From positions 9,019,751 through 9,083,750 of the forward strand of contig OZ037773.1 of the NCBI GenBank assembly GCA_964035545.1: 64,000 nucleotides of DNA, written 5' to 3'. The notes beneath the pieces are model-generated. The model was not told where the DNA came from, searched no databases, and saw only the letters and a list, made by a program, of their open reading frames with translations. Position numbers and translations under genes: made by a program. Numbering within the stretch: the stretch's first letter is position 1; each line of letters begins with the position of its first letter. Below are positions 11,005-34,240 of the stretch, piece after piece. Source of the stretch: Bugula neritina. Taxonomy: Eukaryota; Animalia; Bryozoa.

Positions 11005-14000
11005 ATGAATGTTCGTCAAAGGCAAACAAGTAAGTAAACAACAAATTACAAATGTCAAATACAATTTCAATTTGAATTACAAAATGAAAATTAAGTTTGA
11101 CAAATAGCAATACTCATTTCAAATAATAATGCAATAATATTAAATTTAATATTGATAATAATTATTAATATTAACAATAACATAGAGTCAAAAAATTGCA
11201 GTAATGCTAGTTTTACTACTAGCAAATGCAATTAAATTAGATTATAGATATAATGATAATCATCAATGATACTTGATTATAATATTAATAATTTAAATAG
11301 TATATTTTAATTTAGTTTAAGTTAATCATAATGATAATTATTGTGATTGTCAAGAATTATTATTATAGTTCTTTTTAGAGTGTGTGTCTACAACTGCTAC
11401 TATTGCAAAATAAAACGTAGATGCTAACTTTTAGTTTATATAACTAGTAAATGTAATGTGGTCGGTCTGATTCATAATCAGTGAATGTGATCATATAAAA
11501 AATAGACACCTTGTGCCCACAGTTTCATTTTCTTTGGTAATCATGTTGTTACACCTGATTAATATTGCAGAAATTATGACATCATTGCTCATGTCATCAA
11601 CACTAAACTTCCTATATTTATATTCTAATATAATACAAAAAATACACTTTATTACTAACTACTAAGTTTAATAAATTTACTTCAATTAGATTGTATGTAG
11701 TTAACATGAAATTCTTTGTAGTTAAAACTACATAGTGATTGTTTCTGTTAACAAGTTTATTTACTAAAAATAATGTGCTAATATCGTTACAACCTATAAT
11801 ATAATCAATAGTAGCATTATACATCTTATTGCTTATTCGCTCAGACATCGACACCTTGTGACATCTTTGCAGGTGCCCTCAGGCGTATGCTGAACTTCAA
11901 CCAGCCTAGTGCTAAGCTGGGTGGTCAGTCTGGCGAGCCTCAGTGGAAGGTGCTAGTGTATGACCGGTGCGGGCAGGATATCATATCCCCCCTCCTCAGT
12001 GTCAGAGAGTTGAGAGATGCAGGAGTTACTCTCCACCAGTATGTAGAGTTCCTCTGTCTCATTACTCTCTTTACTTATAAACAGTCACACAGTCACAGAG
12101 TATTACAATTTCTCTCTGTTTAGGGTTCAGCTAAGGCAAAATAAGTTAGTCTAAGCTTAATCTCTTTATGGATACTAAATTTTTCTATATTCACTGTGTT
12201 TACGGCTACGATCCTTTTGTGACATCATCAATGCCCCTCGTTGTAGCCTAGGTAGCGAGTCATTCAGTCATCTACCTGACTAGACTTAAGTTTTGCTGCC
12301 TTTTTGAATTTTGCCGTATGTAGATTGTATAACTAAATTGTATGACAATTACTTACTGCAGGTTATTACATTCAGACCGAGAATGCATACCAGATGTACC
12401 TGCGATATACTTTGTATTACCTACAGAAGATAATATTAAGAGAATTGCAAAGGTTCGTAGTTAATTGAAGAATAATTCTGAATTAAGGTTTCCCTATATT
12501 TCTTTTGGTTGTTGTATAGACACTAGAGCAGTTTAGTTTTATTTAGTGTGCTCTAATCTATGGATGTTCTAGAAAAGTTGTGTAAGCTCTTCTATTAGTG
12601 CTGAGTCTTCAAACAGTAAAAGTTTGTAGGATTATTTCTTATAAGGGTAAGTACTGTTAGTATAGAAGAGTGTAGAAGTGTTTGAAATGATGCAATAAGC
12701 AGTCACTAGAGTTGTACAACAACACTTCCAAATTAATCTGTTTAGGGCACAGAAGTTTTAAGGTAGTGTTTTGTGTTTTGCTGTCTTGAACTAATAATTT
12801 CTCATCATTTTTTTATTTTTCTATGATTTTAGGATTTGGGTGACCATCTGTATGAGTCATACTATTTCAACTTCATCACGGCCGTCAGCAGGTCTCTTCT
12901 TGAGGATTTGGCTCAGGCAGCGATTACATCACAGGCTGTCACTCAGATACACAAGGTGAGTGAGTCTCAGTGAGTGAGTGAGTGAGTGAGTGAGTTAGTG
13001 AGTGAGTGAGTGAGTGAGTGTCAGTGAGTGAGTCTGAGTGAGTGAGTGAGTGAGTGAGTAAGTGAGTGAGTGAGTGAGTTACAGGCTATGGTTATGGTAT
13101 GTTGCAGGTTGTTGACCAATATCTCCATTTCATCAGTCTAGAGGAGGACATGTTTACTCTACGACCACAAAATGCTGACGCTGCCAGTTATTATGGTGAG
13201 TTGTCTGTCCAATCGTGTTCTATCACACTATTGCTCATAGACTTGTCTGTCTAGGCAGTGTATTCACTGTGTACTCAAGAGCTGAGGAGCTCATAGACTT
13301 GTCTGTCTAGGCAGTGTATCCACTACTACTAAGTCTGTTGTTTCCTGTTTCAGAAATAAACAGAGCCGATGTCAAGGACACGGAGATGGAGCAGACTATT
13401 AGTATTATCGTGGAGGGACTCTTCTCTTACTTTGTCACTCTAGGTGAGTGCTTCAAGTAGTACTCTGTTTCTTCAAGTAGTACTCTGTTGCTTCAAGTAG
13501 TAGTCTGTTTTTTCAAGTAGTTCTTAGCTGCTTCTCTAGGTGAGTACTTTGTTACTCTAGTGATGGGAGTTTTAAAATACTTTTATGTTATGTTAATTAC
13601 CTCACTCTACCTCAACTGGTATGATTGTATATTAAATCATGTGTACTGTATAATCAATAATGGATATTGCATATTGGATAATAAATGCAGTATAACAGAT
13701 TATATGTGTTGTATATTAGGTAATGTGTATTGTATAGCGTATACCTTATAACGGATAATGAATATTGACTAACTGATAATATAGGCTCTGTTCCAATAAT
13801 TCGCTGTCCCAGAGGAAATGCTGCCGAAATGGTGGCTGAAAGACTCGACAAGAAGCTAAGAGAAAATGTGCGAGATCCAAGAAACTCGTTGTTCAAGTAA
13901 GGCAACTCTCAAACTCGATGCCTGCAACTCCTGACATTAGCACCATTTTGTTTGCTGACTCCTGGTATTAATGGCAATTTTGTGCTGTCCATTTGTTCTA

Positions 14001-17000
14001 TTATATTGCATTGTATGATTAGTATTACAATGTCCTTACGACTACTATTATGATGTGTATCATGTTTTAGTGCACTGGACAGTTCTCAACCTCTAGTGGT
14101 TGGTTTACAAAGACCTCTACTCATACTATTAGATAGAAACATGGACCTAACTACTCCCTTACATCACACATGGACCTACCAAGCACTTGCTCACGATGTC
14201 TTGGTGTGTTACCTTTACTATAGTATTTGCATGTGACACCTGCAAGCACTTGCTCTCAGTGTCTTGGTGTGTTACCTTTACTCTAGTATTTGCATGTGAC
14301 ACCTGCAAGCACTTGCTCTCAGTGTCTCGATATGTCTATTGTATCATGTGTTTGACAGAACGCATTGACTATCATCGCTTACATACAGCTAGCTGCTCAA
14401 AATGTTTTTAGAGTCTTATTTGATAGTACTGTTGTATATGTTATTTATATTCTGTGTGCACCAAAAAGCACTATTTCCTCATGCCTCAAAAGTAATTTGT
14501 TTCTTGGGAGTTATCCCTACATCAATTAATTTGTTTTCTTCATTAAGCTTGTATATGCTTAATCTGATATCACAGATGTAAATATTACCATGCCTGTTTC
14601 CGACTCTGAAATTCTTCTGCTTTTAGACAGACTTCTAAGCATTTTATACGTAAACATTTGATCTCTGTAAGACATTGCTCTTTTTCTTTTAGAAATTGAA
14701 GTTGAACAACATAGAGATCGAGGATCCCAGTGATCAGGCAACTCCAGGAGCACATGGTGGGGCAATTCCCAAGAAAAAGAAGAAGTCGTTTGATCTAAAC
14801 AGTTCTACAGACAAGTTGTGGCAGGTGATTGCTGGTGTAGTGTGCTGTGGTCAGGCGATAGTGATGCTACTAAATTATGCAGTCAACGTGTTTTATTATG
14901 TTTTACCTGAGATATTCCTACATCAGGGAGTTTCTTACAAACAGCACAGCTTTTCTGATGTCACTATTTAAAAAATTACAGCACAAATTGGTACTTACTT
15001 GCTATTAATACCATGTATACTGTTGTCCAGCTCATATTAAAGACATAATTTTCTGAAAGCAAAAAACATTTACAGTGAAGCAATGTCTTCTGAATTTTGT
15101 TTTGATTTATTAGGTGATAGTTGTGTTATGCTGTATATGTGCGGTGTGGCGATGCAGCACTGTATTTATATATAACATTCTGTGGTGCACTGTGGTGATA
15201 CAATGTAATTCTTATCAGATTCACAGAGGCAGTCCATTCCCTACAGTAGCTGAGGCTATCCAAGAAGATCTTGATGATTATAGGACTAAGGAAGTGGAAG
15301 TGTCAAGGTTAAAGAATGCCATGGTGAGTGGGAGGAGTCAGTAGGGGAAGGGAAGGAGTCAGTAGGGGAAGAGGAGGAGTTAGTAGGAGGAGGGGAGGAG
15401 TCAGTAGGGGAAGGGGAGGAGTCAGTAGGGGAAGGGGAGGAGTTAGTAGGGAAAGGGGAGGAGTTAGGGGGAGGGGAGGAGTCAGTAGGGGAAAGGGAGG
15501 AGTTAGTTGGGGGAGTTGAAGTAATTTCATTAAATAATTTTCAGAAGATGAAATTTTGTGACCATTATTTGGAGTTGTCACATTTTCTCCATGAACATGC
15601 ATTGCATACATTTGCAACCAAAATAAGATTTACGAATAAATAGAACGCCACATTCTGAAAATTTGTTTAAGCAGTCAGTCATCTAGCATTAAAATGAAAA
15701 TTAAATTGATATTTGGGATATTCAAAAATAAACTTGGCAATTTTAATTTCAACTTGAAATATTTTGAAATGTTTCAGTTTTATCGATTTTTTAATTCATT
15801 ATGATGCAATTCTTTGCCACTGCCATTAAAAAGCACATTTAGTTGGAAAGCACTGCGTATAGTCAAGGTAGTACTTTGTTTCTAAGAGTGAGGATAACTC
15901 CAAATGATAATAATCGGTGGTTAATTCTGGTTATTTGTTGTATTTGTTACTAATTGCATATCGCTGATTAGCAGTCAGTTCAACTCTCTCCAGTTTCTCT
16001 TTTCACCTTTCCCAGGGCCTGGAAGGAGAGGACGAAAACGCTGCCATATCCTTACTCTCCGACAACACTGCTAAACTCACGTCAGCGATGAGGTGAGTTG
16101 TCCCCCCACTTTCTCAGCTGAATTAGTCCTCAGGTGTCAGGAGTGAGGAATACTGAACTGTTCGTGTCTCAGCATTCGATATTTTAGATACTAGTTTTTC
16201 AATTAGTGTTGTCAGTATTTTTAGTGTGTCTTATGATTTATATTCTCTTAACTCCAAATAATTATTTTTATAGTTTGAGGTTTTGTGCACCAAAAATATA
16301 ACAAAATAATAATTATTGTTAAAGATAGCAAATACCATAATACATTGTCTGACTGACCTCACAGTTTGTCTTCACCAATCAAATTAGCAGGTATTTCTGT
16401 CTATTGATATCAATACGGGTAGCTATAGAGCTCATTTCCTTTGTTTCTATATTGTGGAAGTTTTCTCCCCCCTTTCATGTTACTAGATGGCACAACTCCA
16501 TAGCTCTCATGTTAATCATAGATTTGTACTTGACGGAATTTAATTTATTTGCTATGGAATGTCTCACTTTAGTTCACTTCCTGAGCTGCTCCAACGCAAG
16601 AGGTTTCTGGACATGCACACTACCATAGCAACAGCTCTCCTCGAGTTCATTAAAGCAAGGAAACTTGACCTCTACTTTGAAACAGAAGAGAAATTGATGA
16701 GTAGAAGTGCACTGGTATGTACTTAAGTTCTAGAGGTCATGCAACACACATGTTGTGCCTTCCAACAGGAAGTTTGCTCACTGGGAAAATATTTTCCTGG
16801 TTTCATGAATGACATACATTTTTGTGAATAAATTGTAAACATCACTTTTCCTGTAAACAAACTTCTTGACAAAGTCAGTACAAAGTTTGTATAGCAGTGG
16901 ACACCTTCAGCTAATAGCTGAGTGTTAGGTGTTTAGCTATTGGCTGTCAGATTGTTAGATGTTCAGCTATTGGCTGCGTTTTACAGGAACAGTCTCTCCT

Positions 17001-23000: not shown

Positions 23001-26000
23001 GAATGGCTCTACCATATGAATGGCTCTACCATGCCATCAGTAACTACATGTAATATGTTGGAACTTCCCATTGCTGCTGTATTTAACCACTCATTTCGTT
23101 GTTGTCATAGCTGGGTAGTCCGTGAAAATACGTGAATACATGGATATTGATGTTATTGCTGCTTGTGCCTGTGTTGACAGAGATATTTGAAAAGAGAAAC
23201 ATCCTGGAATAATTGCTATTCCATGTTATTTGGTTATTAATTAGTTCACGGTTGACTTAACGATACTGTTGCATTCAGCAGTCTTCTAGCTTGCAAACAA
23301 ACAGCGACTTATTGCGTCTGCTTTGAATGTATGCACGTATGCATGTATGCGCTTACACGAACTAATAAACTAAATTGAATATCGAGGCTATGTCCAAAGC
23401 AGTTTCGGTTTAGTTGACCAATGAGATGTCAGCGATTGCTGATTGATTCCCACGTTGCTAGTATAAATGAATAAGTTCTAGATCTGCCGGCCAGTTGCAA
23501 CAGGTATACACACGCGAAAAGTCTGTATTTGCGGTAAAATTTCTTATTTCACGTAATGGCTTCAAACTCCGAATCTATACCAAACGGTACCTCTACTCAA
23601 CCTGAGAGTGAGACTGCGGGGTCACTTTCTCAAGCAGTGGGCGCCATTCAAGTCAGTGGTGAGTAACCTAAACTCATTAGACTTAGTCTTACTCTTGGAA
23701 TTAGTTTTAGTTATCCCCCCCCCCCCGTAATATTATTTTTACCTAGTTTGCCATTTTTGCCATTCTTACCTGTGCCATTTTAACCTGACACCAGTTTTGA
23801 TACAAGTAATTACTTTCTAAATAAGTCAATATGAATATGAATATTATGTTTATTGTTTATAATTATTTTCGCTTTAACAATCGTTGTGATTGTTTAATAA
23901 TAGAAAGTTACTTAAATACATGAAAAACTGAGTAAATCATTAATATCTTTAGATATGTAGTTTTTACTATAAAACTACAGATTTAAATAAATAATGCTTT
24001 GCTAGTAGTAGTGAACTAATTTAGCTACTAGGTTTAGTCCATCCCTGATGAATAATTTGACCCAAAACCACAAGTTCATTGGAGCATATCAATGCTAACA
24101 GATGTATAATGCTGAGACCGCTTGATCAGTATTTCATCACAATATTATCACTAGTTTATCTGACTGGAGATTCTGATTTTGAAAAGACTTAATGATAAAG
24201 TGAAAATTGTATATTCAGCCAACTGTAATCCTGGTGTTGCAAACTTTATTTCCTCTACAATGTTTAGCATTCAATGAAGAGCCTCACTAGCAACTGAGCT
24301 TGTTGATATTAGGTGCCAGAACTGTAATGAATGAGGTATTGCTTTATTCTCATGACGTAAATTCAATGTCTTGTAGCAAGCAACAGTTCTCCTGATAGTA
24401 ATGGCTTGACCAATGCAGGAGTTGAAAAGACATATTTCGACAGAATTGATGGAAAGTTGACAAAAACAGAGTATGAGATCAAAGATAAAGGAGTATTTGT
24501 GGTGATTAAGAACACATCTTTCAACTATAAACACAACGGGCATGACTGGAGCAAGGAACCCACTCTAAATTATGATGCAGATGTAGAAACACTCCAAAAA
24601 ACTTTCAACTTGGCTGATGACGCATCAAATTTCATCCTTGGATGTGACTTGACATCAGAAGATCCGGAAGGGGAGGATCAGTTTGATGTATTCATGGATA
24701 ACCTGGTTGAAGATAATCCACATGAACCTCGTTGTGATTTCCTGGTGTTTGTATTGATGTCACACGGCCTTCCGGATGGAAAGTTCCTATTGGCTGAAGA
24801 GCGTGAGAGCCTCGCTTGCTGTGGCAGTGAACATGGAGATGTCACTCACAAATACCAAGGCTATTGTCATATGCGTGATATAAAAAATGATGTGGTCAAG
24901 AAGATACAAGATAGTCCTAGATTCGTTAACATACCCAAAATATTTCTGGTGCAAACATGCCGTGGTGTTCGTATGGATGCAGTAGATTTAAGGAAGCCAA
25001 AAGCTCTTCCTTCACAGCTGAAGCCACCATCGCCAACTGTGACACTCGCCGACAAGTTCATACCAGATGGCTCTGACACTTACATCATGTTTGCTTGCTA
25101 CGAGGACCACCTGTGTTGGGTGGATAATGGCGGGTCCTTCCTTGTCAGGTATTTTTGTGAAGTAATGGATGAGTTGCAAGTAGCAATAAAACAGAGTCAA
25201 ACATTCTTTGCAGAGCTGGACCATAGGCTGATTGACCAGAGGGGAGCAAATGGCATGTTTCCATTCAACAGCGATGAAACAATGAGACGTCTCAACAACT
25301 ATGTCACCAAAGTACGAAATTGGGACAAGTTGTTCCTCTGTCCAGAGAGTTTGACCGGAGGGTGGATGGAGGGCGTGGCCCAGAAGACTATGGCTAAGAT
25401 CACCAACACTCTCATCGTTATGAAGGTCTTAGATGAAGATGGTTATGTCATTGACGCAAAGTATGACAAGCAGCAGCCCCACATCAACTGCACTCTCAGG
25501 TTTAAACTGTCTATGCTGAAAGTGTTACGGACACAGTGGGACGATATGCAGTGACACCAACAAATGGCTCTGTCCATCATTTATCTGAATACATATCCTT
25601 GGCTTTGAGTTCTGTATTTTATAACTCTTCCAGTTACCTGCATTTTTGCTCATTGAAATCAAATTCTCCTTGTTTCTATAATTGCACACACTTTCACTGA
25701 ATTGTTTTTTCTATTTATGTAAATGTGTACAATGTACATCTTATTTATGATATGCAAAATTTCTAATATATAGTATTTTATTATTTGATATATTATATTT
25801 TAAATATAACAAGATTGAAATATATTGTGTTGTTTAACTGATTAGTCTATACTCATGGAAAAGTTTGGCTAAAACATTATGCTGGTAATGCTATTACTAT
25901 TGGCTCCAGTGGGCATGTTTTGAAACTTGGCATTTCTGTTCATGAAGTATTTCTCAAGTTCCATTCTTACATCCTAACACAAACATCTTGTCACAAACAT

Positions 26001-26519
26001 GTTGAATCATCTCTGAACCAAATACTAATAATTACTTTTCATTGCTCTGCCTCATAGCTGCAGTATTCTACTAGCGAAAACCAACATGGCAATTCTGAAA
26101 ACTATCTTACTAGTTTTATCATTTTGAGACCAGATCATTTTTTGAAGTTATCCTACTGTACACTGTTAGTGTTTTAGTATTACTTAAAAACCACGAGTAG
26201 ATAGGTAACAAGTCTTGTAAGAGTTGAATAGTATGCGCTGTCACAGTCTGTTGAAGTTCTGATAACCATATGACAGCACATCAATCTGCTATGTTTGTCT
26301 ACTGCGGCAAGTGTTGGCAAGTGCTTGTATCCAGGTTGGCTGGGAAAATAATAATTCAGGTTACCTGTTTTTGTAATCCTTCTTTTACTATACACTACTA
26401 GTAGTAGTACTACTACTGCTACTATTACTACTACTACCACTGCTACTACTATTGCTACTACTGTTACTAGTACTACTATTATACTACTACTACTATTGCT
26501 ACTACTACTACTACTAGTA

Positions 26520-26556
<37 letters not shown>

Positions 26557-26675
26557 CACTACTACTGCTACTACTACTACTACTACTGCTACTACTACTA
26601 CTACCACTGCTACTACTATTGCTACTACTGCTACTACTACTGCCACTACTACTACTATTACCGCTACTACTGCTG

Positions 26676-26710
<35 letters not shown>

Positions 26711-26720
26711 GCTGCTGCTG

Positions 26721-26772
<52 letters not shown>

Positions 26773-28580
26773 CTGCTACTAATAATAGTATAACTGTATT
26801 ATAACTTGCAGAAGCTTCCCGCAACGCGAATAGCCGATGCCCTGATGGAGCAAAAGTCCTCACAAGATGTGGAAAACTACAGATATTTTGATCCTAAATT
26901 AATAAAACACACTGAAAGGTTTGACACCTCATATGATTTGTCTGACACCTTATGTAATTAGTCTGACATAGGGCTACTACTCTAGTCATTAGGATACTAT
27001 CCTTGCCATAGGGCTACTACCCTAGTCATTGGGATACTATCCTTGCCATAGGGCTACTACCCTAGTCATTGGGGTACTACTTTAATCATTCAGTAACATA
27101 AGTGTTTATGAAGTTGTTTAGTCAACTTAGCTACTGGCCTTTTACAACCACTGAAGCTAGTTTTAAAAAAAAATCTTTAAGCAAACATCCAGTTCAAACA
27201 TTACACAGGCATGATGCGTGACTTTAATACTCTAACAGCTCAGCTTTGCTGCCTAGTAGCACTCTGACCAATAGAATCTAATGTAGCATTTGCTGCTGGA
27301 CTGATGTAACATAGTGCTGTGTTTACTTGACTCTCTAATATAATGGAGTCGTTTATTTTTGACATCCCAAAAATACAGATTTGAGTTATCCCCCCTCCCC
27401 CGCGTCATTCTGGTCAATAGAACTCTAGCGCCTCCTGACCCAAAGTATGTGCATTGTGTGCAAGATCTCATATATGTTGTGTTGTGTTGTCGGTTTTAGT
27501 GTGCCTAGGAGTAAAGCGCCCTCTAGTGAAGCAGTGGTGTTCATGATAGGGGGAGGTAACTATATCGAGTACCAGAATTTACAAGATTATGCCAAGGTAT
27601 GTTCATCACACTTACCTTGTCAAGGTATGTACATCACACTTACCGTGTAAGTTGAATGCTTTCACTAAGTGTTAAAATATTCTCCCACCTTCATGTTTAG
27701 ATTATGATTTCAATTGCTTGCAAGGAAATAAGTTTTTAGTGATGCGAATTTCACATTTGAGTGGCTTCAACAGTGTTGTTGTAACTGTTACCAGACGGTA
27801 CTGTAGCTGTTACTATACTGTAGGGGTTACTATACAGTACTGCAGTTGTTACCAGACAGTACTGTAGCTGTTACCAGACAGTACTGTAGCTGTTACCAGA
27901 CAGTGCTGTAGCTGTTACTAGACAGTACTGTAACTGTTACCGGACAGTACTGTGGCTATACTGTGTTGTAGGGAAGTAAGAAGATATCCTATGGATGTAG
28001 TCAAGTCTTGAATGCCAAGGAGTTTGTTCAGCAGGTAAGTTGGGGGCGTAGAGCATAGCCCCACACCTTTTCCGGCACCCATGATGCTTAGGCTATGTTT
28101 GTTAGGCTGCAAATGATTAGATTGCTATAAGTAGATATCAGAGGCTGACAACTCTAGTGTCACTACTAGATAGTATGTCAGTACTGGAGGATTGTGTAAG
28201 ATTTCTATATATAATATCATACAGTTGACTACATGGCTTGACATTACAAAATGTGAGTTTTCTCTGGGAATTTATCAAGCATCAAACTTCCCTCAATGAC
28301 AGGAGAGTTGTAAACAGGAAGTGGTGTCATAATAGTGAATCACTAGTTAAATATTCAGGGAGCAGCTGTGGTCTAGGGGTTAGAGCGTTTGCCTTATAGT
28401 ATGCACTGAATCATGGGTTCAAACTGGACAAAGGTCATGGGTGATGTTAAGAAGAGCATCCATCCAGTCATAATTGTCTCATCTGAATAATAGTTGGATA
28501 TTCAGTATTCTAGTAGTTGTATTGTCACCACAAGTAACTCCATGTTGCAGCTGACGCAGCTCGGACAGGAAATGAGGTGA
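11005..28580 (+). CDS. SCFD1: Sec1 family domain-containing protein 1 (Sly1; ER-Golgi SM protein), ~634 aa, 20 exons
   Basis: Exons 11005-11029, 11873-12038, 12362-12452, 12833-12955, 13108-13195, 13354-13443, 13785-13896, 14071-14203, 14693-14824, 15219-15323, 16016-16092, 16573-16714, 16987-17091, 17613-17692, 18338-18400, 18773-18848, 26812-26918, 27500-27596, 27972-28034, 28551-28580 (1905 nt, phases consistent). Sly1 motifs present: [81 protein letters not shown]. Confidence 0.96.
12956..13080. repeat. (GAGT)n microsatellite starting at the exon-4 donor GTGAGT
   Basis: Directly visible. It fills most of the intron. Confidence 0.9.
14180..14330. repeat. 63-bp tandem duplication that includes the SCFD1 exon-8 3' end and donor
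   Basis: caagcacttgctc recurs at 14180, 14243 and 14306. Confidence 0.85.
15330..15515. repeat. 21-bp purine-rich minisatellite (ggaggagtcagtaggggaagg), potential G-quadruplex
   Basis: Directly visible just after the exon-10 donor. Confidence 0.9.
17757..18305. repeat. 17-bp minisatellite (actatcagttactatat)
   Basis: About 30 near-perfect copies in SCFD1 intron 14. Confidence 0.95.
19210..19810. repeat. Two blocks of a ~28-bp minisatellite (acagtcttcactctacctgtgtaatcat)
   Basis: Blocks at ~19210-19410 and ~19660-19810. Confidence 0.85.
20080..21060 (-). mobile_element. Possible highly decayed Mutator-like (MULE) transposase remnant, interrupted by a minisatellite
   Basis: Minus-strand fragments [19 protein letters not shown] / [15 protein letters not shown] / IR*HQ*RYEGM resemble, in the right order, the WSV...RTNN..EGWH..LN / FY.L...L..E / L.R.QR..Y C-terminal motifs of MULE-like transposases. 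Stops and frameshifts are present and no TIRs were seen. Confidence 0.3.
20320..20585. repeat. 40-bp minisatellite (caagtagttgtggaaggtgacaggtagtgtcaggtgttga)
   Basis: The unit recurs every 40 nt from 20341 to 20541. Confidence 0.9.
21380..21927. repeat. 23-bp minisatellite (cccttaagtgatcacctccctgc)
   Basis: About 24 near-identical tandem copies with no spacers. Confidence 0.95.
23401..23467 (+). promoter_or_regulatory. Core promoter of caspase-like gene A: IRF/ISRE-like site, CCAAT box, TATA box
   Basis: AGTTTCGGTTT at 23401-23411, CCAAT at 23418-23422, TATAAA at 23462-23467, about 90 nt upstream of the ATG. All three are conserved in copy B. Confidence 0.6.
23556..25554 (+). CDS. Atypical caspase-like cysteine protease A (peptidase C14 fold, ~426 aa), nested in SCFD1 intron 16
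   Basis: Exon 1 23556-23658 (phase 1) joins exon 2 24377-25554 in frame. Motifs: GVFVVIKN (beta1), [26 protein letters not shown]...[28 protein letters not shown]. Confidence 0.9.
26390..26780. repeat. (CTA)n/(CTG)n trinucleotide tract upstream of the SCFD1 exon-17 acceptor
   Basis: Directly visible. It explains the poly-S/poly-L ORFs. Confidence 0.95.
27780..27955. repeat. 22-bp minisatellite (ccagacagtactgtagctgtta); paralogous copy at ~32780-32965
   Basis: Directly visible in both segmental copies. Confidence 0.9.
28360..28475 (+). mobile_element. Degenerate tRNA-derived SINE-like fragment (second copy ~33370-33485)
   Basis: A-box-like TGGTCTAGGGG and B-box-like GGGTTCAAAC at Pol III spacing, followed by aagagcatcc. 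No intact cloverleaf. Confidence 0.45.
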
Positions 28581-29482
28581 TTTCACGGAAGAAGATTGAA
28601 ACTTTAGAGTTCGGAATAGAAATTCAGCAGCCTGTAGTTTTTACACTTCTCTGACATTCTACAGATTGGAGGCTGGAAGTCATATCTTTGTTCACAAGTG
28701 GGATGTCTATTACTCCATGAGCCATGGCTGATGATATATAAGACATTGTATTGTTATATTAAAATTATATTTTATATGGTAACATTTATATTCACTAATT
28801 GTAATTTATTCTTTAGCATATGTATGATTAATATTACAAGATATAAGGAAATAAATGTATGTAAAACATGCAGCAGAATGGGCTTTATTTTCCTGGTAGC
28901 ATGTGCAGGAGTTGTCATTTCTGTAAGTATCAGTACAAGGAAAGACAACTGCATACTCGGTTATCAGATTAAAATAGTAACTGTTGATTTTACTGAAGAC
29001 TTCATTTCAATATGCAGTACATCATGTATGCACACTGACTGGGTTAGTATATATGGAACATTATTATCCAGTTCTTTTGGAATTGTTGGTGTGAACATTG
29101 CATTAAGTTTTCTTGAAATTAGCCGTAGTAAAATATTTTCTCAGGCTTTAAAACGAACTAACAATGCCCTATTTGAGTGGTTGTTTGAGTAAAACCATGC
29201 CACTACCTTGAATTACAATGTACTAAATAAAGTTAGACTAAGCACCAGTTTAACACTGGTGTTCATTATTAGTCATATCTGGATAGTCTGTATAAATAGG
29301 TAAATATAAGGATATTGATATTGGTTATTAATTAGTTCACGGTTGACTTAACCATACTGTTGCATTCAGCAGTCTTCTAGCTTGCGAACAAACAGCGACT
29401 TATTGCGTCTGCTTTGACTCTACACTACAATACTTACATGATAATTGACTGATCAAATATTAAGGCTATAAATTTCCAAAGC

Positions 29483-29549
29483 AGTTTCGGTTTAGTTGAC
29501 CAATGAGATGTCAGCTATTTATGATGAACTTCCCAGTTGCTAGTATAAA
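29483..29549 (+). promoter_or_regulatory. Core promoter of caspase-like gene B: IRF/ISRE-like site, CCAAT, TATA
   Basis: AGTTTCGGTTT at 29483-29493, CCAAT at 29500-29504, TATAAA at 29544-29549. Spacing is the same as in copy A. Confidence 0.6.
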
Positions 29550-29633
29550 TGAATAGGTTCTAGATCTGCGTGGCTAGTTGCAACAGGTATTCACACACGA
29601 AAAGTTAATACTTAATATCTAATAATCTAAATA

Positions 29634-31642
29634 ATGGCTTCAAACTCCGAATCTATGCCTAATGGTACCTCTGGATCTGCTACTCAACCTGAGAGTGAAA
29701 CTGCTCAAGTCGACTGTGAGCATTCATTAGTTATTACTATTAGTTATCTTTCTATAACCTATTAGTATTACTATAGCAGTAAACATTACCTATATTTTGT
29801 ACTTGTGGTTCAGTGTTGTATAATTACTGATGTTTCCTTGGATATATTGTTTCTCAAAGTCTATTCTTGCAATAGCTGTATTCTTTACATAGTTCAACTA
29901 TAGTTTCATTTCAAGTATATTGTTATACTTACACCCTGTATGCTTCTCCCTACTGTTACTGTATACACATTATAAATTAATTACAGTTCTCATTATCAAT
30001 GCAATCATGACAATTGTCCAACTGGAAGTATCATAAAATTAAATTTATTATCCACCCAACGTAAATATGGCTTTGATGCAAATAAATAGATTCTAAATAA
30101 GTCAATATAAATATGATTGTCACTATATAACAATCGTTGTGATTGTTTATTACTATAGAAAATTAATTAAATGCATCAAAAACTGAGGATATCTTTAGAT
30201 GCATATGTATGTTTTACCATTAAACCACACATTTGAATTACATAGTGCTCTTGGTGTATTATGATTGTAGTAGTTTTAATAATTTAAATAACGTTTTGCT
30301 ATAGTAGTTGTAAACTTCCTTAGGCAACTAGGCTACTACATTTAATCTTCTCTGCTAAATAAATTGCCCAAACTACAAGTTCATTGGAAATGTAATATTT
30401 AGATTATAGGTGCCAAAACTGTAATGAATGAGTTATTGTTTTATTCTCATGATGTAATTTCAACATCTTGTAGCAAGCAACAGTTCTCCTGATAGTAATG
30501 GCTTGACCAATGCAGGACTTGGAAAGAAACATTATGTGATTGATGGAAAGTTGACAAAAACAGAGTATGAGGTCAAAAATAAAGGATTATTTGTGGTGAT
30601 TAAGAACATATCTTTCAACTATAAACACAACGGGCATGACTGGAGCAAGGAACGCCCTCTAAATTATGATGCAGATGTAGAAACTCTCCAAAAAACTTTC
30701 AACTTGGCTGATGGTGCATCAAATTTCACCCTTGGATGTGACTTAAGATCTGAAGATCCGGAAGGGGACAATCAGTTTGATGTATTCATGGATAACTTGG
30801 TTGAAGATAATCCAAATGAACCTCGGTATGATTTCCTGGTGTTTGTATTGATGTCACACGGCCTTCCAGATGGAAAGTTCCTATTGGCTGAAGAGCGTGA
30901 GAGCCTGGCTTGCTGTGACAGTAAAAAGAAAGAGGTTACTCACAAATATCGAGGCTATTGTCATATGCGTGATATAAAGAAAGACGTAGTCAAAAGGATA
31001 CAAGATAGTCGTAGGTTCTTAAACATACCCAAAATATTCCTGGTGCAAACATGCCGTGGTGATCGTAAGGCTGCAGTAGATTTAAGGAAACCAAAAGGTT
31101 TTTCACAATCAAAGCCACTATCACCAACAACTGCGGACAAGTTTATACCAGAGGGTTCTGACACATACATCATGTTTGCTTGCTTCGAGGACCACCCGAG
31201 TTATGTAGATATAAAAAGTGGTTCCTTTCTTGTCAAGTATTTTTGTGAAGTAATGGATGAGTTGCAAGTAGCAATAAGACAGAGTCAGGCATTCTTTGCA
31301 GAGCTGGAGCATAGGCTGATTGACCAGAGGGGAGCAAGCAGCATGGATGCATTCAACAGCGATGAAACAATGAGACGTCTCAACAACTATATGACCGAAG
31401 AACTAGAGTTGGGCAAGTTGTTCCTCTGTCCAGAGAATTTGATTGAAGGGTGGATGGAGGACGTGGCCCAGAAAACTATGGCTAAGATCACCAAAGATCT
31501 CATCGTTATGAAGGTCTTAGATGAAGATGGTTATGTCCTTGACACAAAGTATGACAAGCAGCAGCCCCACATCAACTGCACTCTCAGGTTTAAACTGTCT
31601 ATGCTGAAAGTGTTACGGACACAGTGGGACGATATGCAGTGA
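29634..31642 (+). CDS. Atypical caspase-like cysteine protease B (~416 aa), tandem paralogue of A
   Basis: Exon 1 29634-29715 (phase 1) plus exon 2 30474-31642. The ORF is intact with SHG and QTCRG and is colinear with copy A. Confidence 0.9.
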
Positions 31643-32779: not shown

Positions 32780-34240
32780 GACAGTACTGTAGTTGTTACT
32801 AGACAGTACTGTAGTTGTTACCAGACAGTACTGTAGCTGTTACCAGACAGTGCCGTAGCTGTTACTAGACAGTACTGTAGCTGTTACCATACAGTACTGT
32901 AGCTGTTACTAGACAGTACTGTAGCTGTTACCAGACAGTACTGTAGCTGTTACCAGACAGTACTGTGGTTATACTGTGTTGTAGGGAAGTAAGAAGATAT
33001 CCTGTGAATATAGTCAAGTCTTGAATGCCAAGGAGTTTGTTCAGCAGTAAGTTGGGGGCGTAGAGCATAGCCCCACACCATTTTCTGTATCCTGTCACTT
33101 AGGCTATGTTTGTTAGGCTGCAAATGATTAGATTGCTGAAAGTAGATATTAGAGGCCGACAACTCTAGTGTCACCACTAAATAGTATGTCAGTACTGGAG
33201 GATTGTGTAAGATTTCTATATATAATATCATACAGCTGAAGGCATGGCTTGACATTACAAAATGTGAGTTTTCTCTGGGAATTTATCAAACATCATATCT
33301 TCCTCATTGACAGGAGAGTTGTAAACAGGAAGTGGTGTCATAATAGTGAATCACTAGTTAAATATTCAGGGAGCAGCTGTGGTCTAGGGGTTAGAGTGTT
33401 TGCCTATAGTAAGCATGAAGTCATGGGTTCAGACCCTAAACAAAGGCTATTGGTGATGTTAGTTTAAGAGCATCCAGTCATAATTGCTCCTGTGTCTCAT
33501 CTGAATAATAGTTGATATTCAGTATTCTAGTAGTTGTATTGTCACCACAAGTAACTCCATGTTGCAGCTGACGCAGCTCGGACAGGAAATGAGGTGATTT
33601 CACGGAAGAAGTTCGAAACTTTAGAGTTCGGAATATAAATTTAGCAGCCTGAGTTTCTAAACTTTAGTGACATTCTACAGATTGGAGGCCGGAAGTCATA
33701 TCTTTGTTCACAAATAGCCGTGGGATATCTATTACTCCATGAGCCATGGCTGAGGATATATAAGACATTGTATTGTTATATTAAAATTATATTTTATATG
33801 GCAACATTTATATTCACTAATTGTAATTTATTCAGTGGCATATGTATGATTATTATTACAAGATATAAGGAAATAAATGTATGTAAAACATGCATTAGAA
33901 TGAGGTTTATTTTCCTGGTAGCATGTGCAGGAGTTGTCATCTTTGTAAATAACAGTACAAGGAAAGACAACTGCATACTCGGTTACCAGATTAAAATAGT
34001 AACTGTTCATCTTACTGAAGACTTCCTCTCAAAGCCCTAAAACTAGTCACTCAGCTCTGAGAGTACAGTTCTATATGCAGTACATCATGTATGTACACAG
34101 ACTAGGTTAGTATATATGGAACATTATTATCCAGTTCTTTTGGAATTGTTGGTGTGAACTTTGGAATTGTTTTCTCTTGCTTGTTATTTTATCCATTACC
34201 TTAAATTAGCTATAGCGAAATATTTTTTTCCAGGTTTTAC
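32780..34240 (+). pseudogene. Duplicated SCFD1 3' end (exon 19', exon 20', 3'UTR)
   Basis: Colinear with ~27780-29150. Exon 19' (32985-33046) lost one nt at the donor (62 nt) and changed YGC to CEY. Exon 20' (33568-33597) is identical to exon 20. No copies of exons 17-18 were seen. Confidence 0.88.

Follow-up and report, generated by a model that had tools for sequence, protein, structure and literature searches.

A bryozoan subfamily of caspase-fold proteins with a predicted uncharged S1 site

Caspases are defined by their specificity for aspartate, which rests on Arg179, Gln283 and Arg341 (caspase-1 numbering). What becomes of a caspase that keeps its catalytic residues and has neither arginine? 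The question is raised by two tandem genes, here called A and B, on the + strand of a 64,000-nucleotide stretch of the genome of Bugula neritina (contig OZ037773.1; G000:C9:9,019,751-9,083,750 of a 216-Mb assembly), which we refer to as the window. Judged from sequence comparisons, A and B have lost both of the arginines that specify Asp, and probably either cut something else or act as regulators. They belong to a lineage-specific caspase subfamily whose remodelled S1 site is predicted to be uncharged.

A conserved subfamily that keeps the catalytic machinery without both arginines would be a natural experiment on re-aiming the caspase fold. In bryozoans, which live as colonies, polypides degenerate in cycles and metamorphosis is drastic; if the A/B proteins are active, they would bring a new protease specificity to cell-death or remodelling pathways. 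Topic searches of the literature turned up no account of caspases in bryozoans or of the present family.

Fold, catalytic residues and S1 positions of A and B

Both proteins score above the curated cut-off of 21.4 bits for Peptidase_C14 (PF00656), with 40.3 bits for A (E 4e-10) and 45.7 bits for B (E 8e-12). An AlphaFold2 model of B built from 40 sequences (model m9d0f665cbfb4), which replaced a poor earlier model from 8 sequences (predicted local distance difference test, pLDDT, 58.9), reached a pLDDT of 84.2 and a predicted template modelling (TM) score of 0.85, and shows the contiguous p20 and p10 arrangement of the caspase/hemoglobinase fold. Foldseek ranked caspase-3, -6, -7 and -8 at the top with E values around 1e-13 (4e-14 for caspase-3) and TM scores by target of about 0.75. 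Using VIA-align, the model superimposed on caspase-3 and -8 with Z scores of 23.4-24.2 and root-mean-square deviations of 2.6-3.4 Å over 220-230 residues, covering nearly the whole catalytic domain of caspase-3 (residues 29-277). All 50 VIA-align entries listed were caspases, with no paracaspase or metacaspase among them. The caspase fold, which an earlier note on this DNA had read from the letters, is borne out by both profile and structure. A search of PDB sequences with the single sequence found caspase-6 only (E 0.006), and a profile search supplied the residue-level alignment; searches of the ESM Atlas returned generic caspase clusters only. Caspases dimerise through the last beta strand; a homodimer prediction with two copies of B residues 27-388 scored 0.01, which is no verdict and counts neither way on dimerisation.

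Several elements are added to this fold. A 22-residue insert rich in Cys and His follows the hairpin that comes after the catalytic His, the p10 part has an extra hairpin, and a helix stands at the C-terminus after the last strand. A C-terminal extension domain was considered and is ruled out: the motif K-Q-Q-P...T-L-R-x-K-L is the ordinary last caspase strand (canonical K-Q-x-P), displaced downstream because a 50-residue helical insert lies between the p10 helices.

The open reading frames (ORFs) and their codons confirm SHG and QTCRG in both genes, and the catalytic His, the oxyanion Gly, Gln283 and the catalytic Cys are all intact. The two arginine positions were located with hhalign, by aligning a 42-row family alignment to 19 canonical caspases from the same search (probability 99.9-100). 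The equivalent of Arg341 is Val in both proteins, placed onto the Arg of S-[WFY]-R with a posterior of 9/9; a separate profile hmmsearch of PDB sequences set the same Val against Arg220 of caspase-6 (S-H-R-E). The equivalent of Arg179, aligned with the Arg of the canonical motif R-x-G-[ST]-x-x-D, is Thr62 in A and Pro61 in B, where Arg60 stands one residue before. The posterior here is 6/9, and this column is only moderately sure because segment L1 exceeds that of canonical caspases by 5-7 residues. These are the substitutions that the earlier note had aligned by eye, and its view that the proteins fit neither the basic S1 pattern of caspases nor the acidic one of meta- and paracaspases agrees with the replacement of both arginines by uncharged residues next to a retained Gln283 and dyad. 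With Thr or Pro, Gln and Val at the S1 positions, the predicted pocket is uncharged and neither caspase-like nor metacaspase-like.

The family and its catalytically dead relatives

When 1.84 billion representative proteins were scanned with the profile, 32 matches fell below 1e-30 and the family members (sequence clusters) came to about 45; ordinary caspases entered the scan only from about 1e-10. In a maximum-likelihood tree (quick search), 44 family rows were separated from 22 other caspases with a Shimodaira-Hasegawa-like approximate likelihood ratio test (SH-aLRT) value of 99. The only named members come from Bugula neritina and Watersipora subatra, and the others from Logan assemblies and from metagenomes of marine biofilms or symbionts. 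Five members lie in the genome of the window, namely A, B and three at C9:4.22 Mb.

Key columns read across the matches show an invariant Trp in the lengthened L1, a Y-x-x-D that opens helix 1, the insert pattern C-(x)-C...H-x5-C-x2-R and a common K-Q-Q-P. The Arg341 position is occupied by Val in about 38 of 42 members, by Ala in two, and by Ile or Leu in dead members, whereas beyond rank 46 of the scan most ordinary caspases have Arg in this column. The Arg179 position is variable across the family (P, T, K, E, I, Q and others), and the Gln of QTCRG is nearly invariant. About 31 members retain His, Gly, Gln and Cys at no more than 25-35% identity to B, which is best explained by catalysis. 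That Val is conserved throughout the family speaks for a remodelled pocket under selection and against decay.

Catalysis has nevertheless been lost repeatedly within the family. The three tandem paralogues at G000:C9:4,223,187-4,230,720 (L003-L005) are 48-49% identical to B, with ratios of nonsynonymous to synonymous divergence (dN/dS) of 0.28-0.35 among them. L003 keeps SHG and QTCRG, but L004 reads SYG with QTCHG and L005 reads SYS with QTCHG, so that the catalytic His has been replaced by Tyr in two recent copies. In addition, QTVSG-like proteins without the catalytic His were seen in P0023, P0028, P0029, P0031, P0032, P0034, P0035 (Watersipora subatra) and P0037. The seven of them placed in the tree form a clade (SH-aLRT 99), P0037 having been left out of it. 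This clade has lost both His and Cys and has kept the CC-H-C-R insert, the Val and the C-terminal motif. Loss of catalysis in L004, L005 and the QTVSG clade implies that the scaffold has a use free of proteolysis, and that the insert belongs to that use.

Bugula and Watersipora both belong to the order of cheilostome bryozoans, and since the sequences from Watersipora are placed in two other subclades, diversification of the family predates the split between the genera. A and B are tandem paralogues in an old, apparently bryozoan-restricted subfamily of the C14A caspases.

Gene models, expression and surroundings

Each gene consists of two exons (Table 1), encoding proteins of 426 residues (A) and 416 residues (B) that are 81% identical. 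When the full-length protein P0001 of Bugula neritina was used as the tblastn query, a short exon 1 came to light about 0.75 kb upstream of each exon 2. Both exon-2 ORFs are directly preceded by TTGTAG, the acceptor AG of gene A lying at 24375-24376, and the joined exons give clean GT-AG introns and one terminal stop per ORF. The limits given in the earlier note hold, its first position (24377) being the first base of exon 2 of A and its last (31642) the last base of the stop codon of B. That note had also described proteins with no CARD or DED prodomain and only a short Ser-rich leader. The leader, of about 60 residues in both proteins, is indeed free of any domain; the Ser-rich stretch is, however, not the N-terminus, an upstream exon with its own ATG having been found for each gene. 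The closest named relatives are three hypothetical Bugula neritina proteins with 83-84% and 45-49% identity.

Evidence of expression comes from contigs of a related organism, 80-99% alike, drawn from four RNA-like runs of four studies, the RNA label being a guess of the index. Exon 2 of B is covered by these contigs, whereas hardly any sequence falls in the intron. Some of them connect positions 29696-29702 (approximately) to 30480, that is, exon 1 to exon 2 of B, and loose contig ends at 30473 bear the final bases of an exon 1. This is good but not final evidence that the orthologue of B is spliced and expressed in the related organism. Between A and B, dN/dS is 0.49 and dS is 0.18, with both frames intact, which indicates a recent duplication followed by moderate purifying selection.

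Table 1. Coordinates of the features of genes A and B and of their surroundings in the window
Feature	Coordinates	Strand	Content	Basis
Gene A, exon 1	23556-23658	+	ATG, 34 codons and 1 base; donor GTGAGT from 23659	tblastn with the N-terminus of Bugula neritina P0001; sequence reading
Gene A, exon 2	24377-25554	+	entire caspase domain and stop	ORF; PF00656, E 3.8e-10
A, Thr at Arg179 position	24562-24564		ACT	
A, catalytic His	24763-24765			
A, Cys/His insert	24811-24876			
A, Gln	24952-24954			
A, catalytic Cys	24958-24960			
A, linker	24967-25053			
A, Val at Arg341 position	25120-25122		GTG	
A, p10 insert	25210-25359			
A, KQQP	25468-25479			
Gene B, exon 1	29634-29715	+	ATG, 27 codons and 1 base; donor GTGAGC from 29716	tblastn; sequence; RNA-like contigs
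Gene B, exon 2	30474-31642	+	entire caspase domain and stop	ORF; PF00656, E 8.4e-12; AlphaFold2 model; Foldseek and VIA-align
B, Arg before Arg179 position	30653-30655		CGC	
B, Pro at Arg179 position	30656-30658		CCT	
B, catalytic His	30857-30859			
B, Cys/His insert	30905-30970			
B, Gln	31046-31048			
B, catalytic Cys	31052-31054			
B, linker	31061-31138			
B, Val at Arg341 position	31205-31207		GTA	
B, p10 insert	31298-31447			
B, KQQP	31556-31567			
SCFD1-like (Sec1-family) exons	11887-12123, 14096-14236, 16559-16726, 27447-27650	+	Pfam Sec1 profile positions 1-29, 201-232, 310-353, 524-552	Pfam
Long trinucleotide microsatellite	26180-26863		poly-Ser, poly-Leu and poly-Val ORFs on two strands	
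Similar ORF pair	28238-28399 and 33249-33467			
Similar ORF pair	28698-29192 and 33720-34040			

The window has about 35% GC and is eukaryotic, with introns and microsatellites. Four exons match the Sec1 profile of an SCFD1-like gene; since gene A (23556-25554) falls within the span of these exons, it is apparently intronic, and gene B lies downstream of the SCFD1-like exon at 27.5 kb. A bacterial or contaminant origin of A and B is ruled out by their GT-AG introns and by the SCFD1 locus of an animal genome. A long microsatellite lies between gene A and the last SCFD1-like exon. Downstream of A and of B stand similar pairs of ORFs, whose first copies (28238-28399 and 28698-29192) have no match in Pfam; the pairing implies that the duplicated segment either reaches well past the caspase genes or carries a repeated element.

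Caspases are very numerous in this genome, with at least 161 exon-level PF00656 matches. The expansion includes many tandem clusters, for example at C1:32.8-35.5 Mb, C6:2.5-6.3 Mb, C7:5.0-7.7 Mb and C9:9.32-9.36 Mb, and three caspase matches lie 240-275 kb downstream of the window on the same contig.

Possible activity and comparison with known systems

The linker between p20 and p10, which is disordered in the model (pLDDT around 50), bears on how the proteins might be activated. At least 25 of the 31 catalytic members have Asp or Glu immediately in front of the first p10 strand, mostly in the form [ST]-[DE]-x-[DE] and often with an acidic P3, at a site that aligns with TEVD193 of caspase-6. 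A GEAD-like site with Asp 7-18 residues past QxCRG is found in 21 of the 31. The same linker Asp is retained in the catalytically dead clade. Basic residues are to be noted as well: Lys or Arg is present in the L1 segment of 24 of 28 members (Lys58 in A and B, Arg60 in B only), although none is fixed in position and P0006 has none. Arg165 of B, at least 90% conserved and specific to the family, aligns at the start of helix 3.

The reading that we prefer, although we regard it as evenly balanced between right and wrong, is that A and B are active caspase-fold proteases whose specificity has moved away from canonical recognition of Asp, which are activated through the linker and which carry an added Cys/His module. 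From their residues, they would still be cysteine proteases. With the two S1 arginines gone, canonical clamping of a P1 aspartate would be impossible, and the P1 preference may have changed to something uncharged or may be recognised through other contacts. The proteins would be held as zymogens and freed by cleavage at the conserved Asp/Glu sites of the linker, the likely cleaving agents being the many canonical caspases of the genome, whose abundance means that they could process the linker themselves. The Cys/His insert is proposed to form a small metal-binding or redox module beside the active-site hairpin; because it is kept in members without catalysis, it probably serves folding or partner binding. 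A more specific version can be put forward only tentatively: among the true C14A caspases, one bryozoan clade would have acquired specificity for a P1 that is not acidic (uncharged or hydrophobic), built around the conserved Val that replaces Arg341 and controlled by a CCHC-type metal or redox module inserted beside the catalytic His.

Several observations weigh against the active, redirected protease. The Arg179 column is only moderately sure, and in B an Arg stands one residue earlier. Arg165 and the frequent Lys/Arg of L1 could still supply positive charge, and the acidic sites conserved in the linker would be expected of an acid-specific protease no less than of upstream activation. The dN/dS of 0.49 between A and B is relaxed, and a scaffold that has repeatedly lost catalysis, in L004, L005 and the QTVSG clade, can evidently function without proteolysis.

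The last two of these points lead to regulatory or decoy caspases, which would fold and pair like caspases, have little or no activity of their own and modulate canonical caspases or other partners, the dyad being kept only through recent history or for weak activity. The absence of both S1 arginines would suit such a role, as would the two of three paralogues at C9:4.22 Mb with SYG or SYS and QTCHG, and the seven-member clade that still has the insert, the Val and the C-terminal motif without His. However, the retention of His, Gly, Gln and Cys in about 31 members so distant from B is hard to explain without catalysis, and the Val at the Arg341 position is conserved and has not drifted, so that for A and B this role seems somewhat unlikely. 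The "regulatory pseudo-caspase" that the earlier note had offered as its alternative suits the relatives (two His-less paralogues and the clade of seven) but not A and B themselves, which keep His and Cys. An unlikely account, in our judgement, is that of caspases still directed at Asp or Glu, which would draw the charge from a relocated Lys58/Arg60 of L1 or from Arg165 and process themselves at the [ST]-[DE]-x-[DE] linker sites. It draws on the same counts of acidic sites and basic residues given above, and with the acidic sites conserved, processing may still take place after an acidic P1. Yet the basic residues of L1 are not conserved in position and are lacking in P0006, and Arg165 aligns to the start of helix 3, which, going by the geometry of caspase-3, is not known to be a pocket position in canonical caspases. 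Moreover, the acidic sites are explicable by the abundant canonical caspases, and the linker Asp kept in the dead clade need not be a site of self-cleavage. The size of the caspase repertoire and the recent tandem duplication (dS 0.18) might finally suggest decaying duplicates without specific function. This is very improbable and largely refuted by conservation: neither reading frame is broken and the GT-AG introns are correct, Bugula neritina has orthologues and Watersipora shares subfamilies, RNA-like contigs are spliced, and the family-specific motifs are conserved at 25-35% identity.

If the non-acidic P1 reading is true, this would be the first subfamily of caspases proper with another primary specificity, together with dead-enzyme regulators of its own. 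With the Cys/His insert and the dead-enzyme relatives, the way in which caspase-like enzymes are regulated could be studied in a compact setting. If, on the other hand, the proteins are inactive or still directed at Asp, they would merely be another divergent branch of a lineage-specific caspase expansion.

Compared with caspase-3, -6, -7 and -8 (C14A), the A/B proteins have the same fold (Z around 24), SHG with QxCRG, Gln283, the K-Q-x-P last strand and a disordered p20-p10 linker with acidic sites; as in effector caspases, the leader is short and is neither a CARD nor a DED. They differ from C14A caspases in the Val for Arg341 and the variable residue for Arg179 (uncharged in A and B), in an L1 longer by 5-7 residues with an invariant Trp, in the 22-residue Cys/His insert, and in the 50-residue helical insert, the extra hairpin of p10 and the C-terminal helix. 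Metacaspases and paracaspases (C14B, MALT1) share the clan CD fold and the His-Cys dyad, and Asp specificity is absent there, as it appears to be here. Their S1 site is lined with Asp/Glu and binds Arg/Lys, whereas no acidic residue occurs in the pocket columns of A and B (Gln, Val and Thr or Pro).

cFLIP, which has DED domains, and the decoy caspases of insects are dead homologues that modulate caspases. L004 and L005, which lost His, and the QTVSG clade, which lost His and Cys, resemble them in having lost catalysis and kept the scaffold, whereas A and B keep His, Gly, Gln and Cys and have no DED. A precedent for an uncharged S1 is provided within clan CD by the C80 cysteine protease domains of toxins, which cut after Leu, and by GPI8, with their hydrophobic or small P1. 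These are, however, different families, which are not known to have any specific sequence relationship to A and B.

Parallels are also found among caspases in which Arg341 is substituted, as in mussel caspase-2 and caspase-3/7-4 (PMC3037946). In the hidden Markov model alignment, the Arg341 column is also non-Arg in proteins of Armadillidium nasatum (named Dronc), Darwinula stevensoni and Ciona savignyi. These are single cases in which Arg179 is mostly kept or was not checked, and all of them lack the inserts after the catalytic His and in p10 as well as the C-terminal motif of the family. Three proteins from ENA and JGI metagenomes (P0061, P0067 and P0088) form a small separate clade of otherwise ordinary caspases with SHG and QACRG and no family inserts. 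In the alignments they have no Arg at either S1 column, L1 reading L-x-Y-x-x-D and the Arg341 column holding Cys, Ser or Val, which implies that the loss of the S1 arginines may have occurred more than once.

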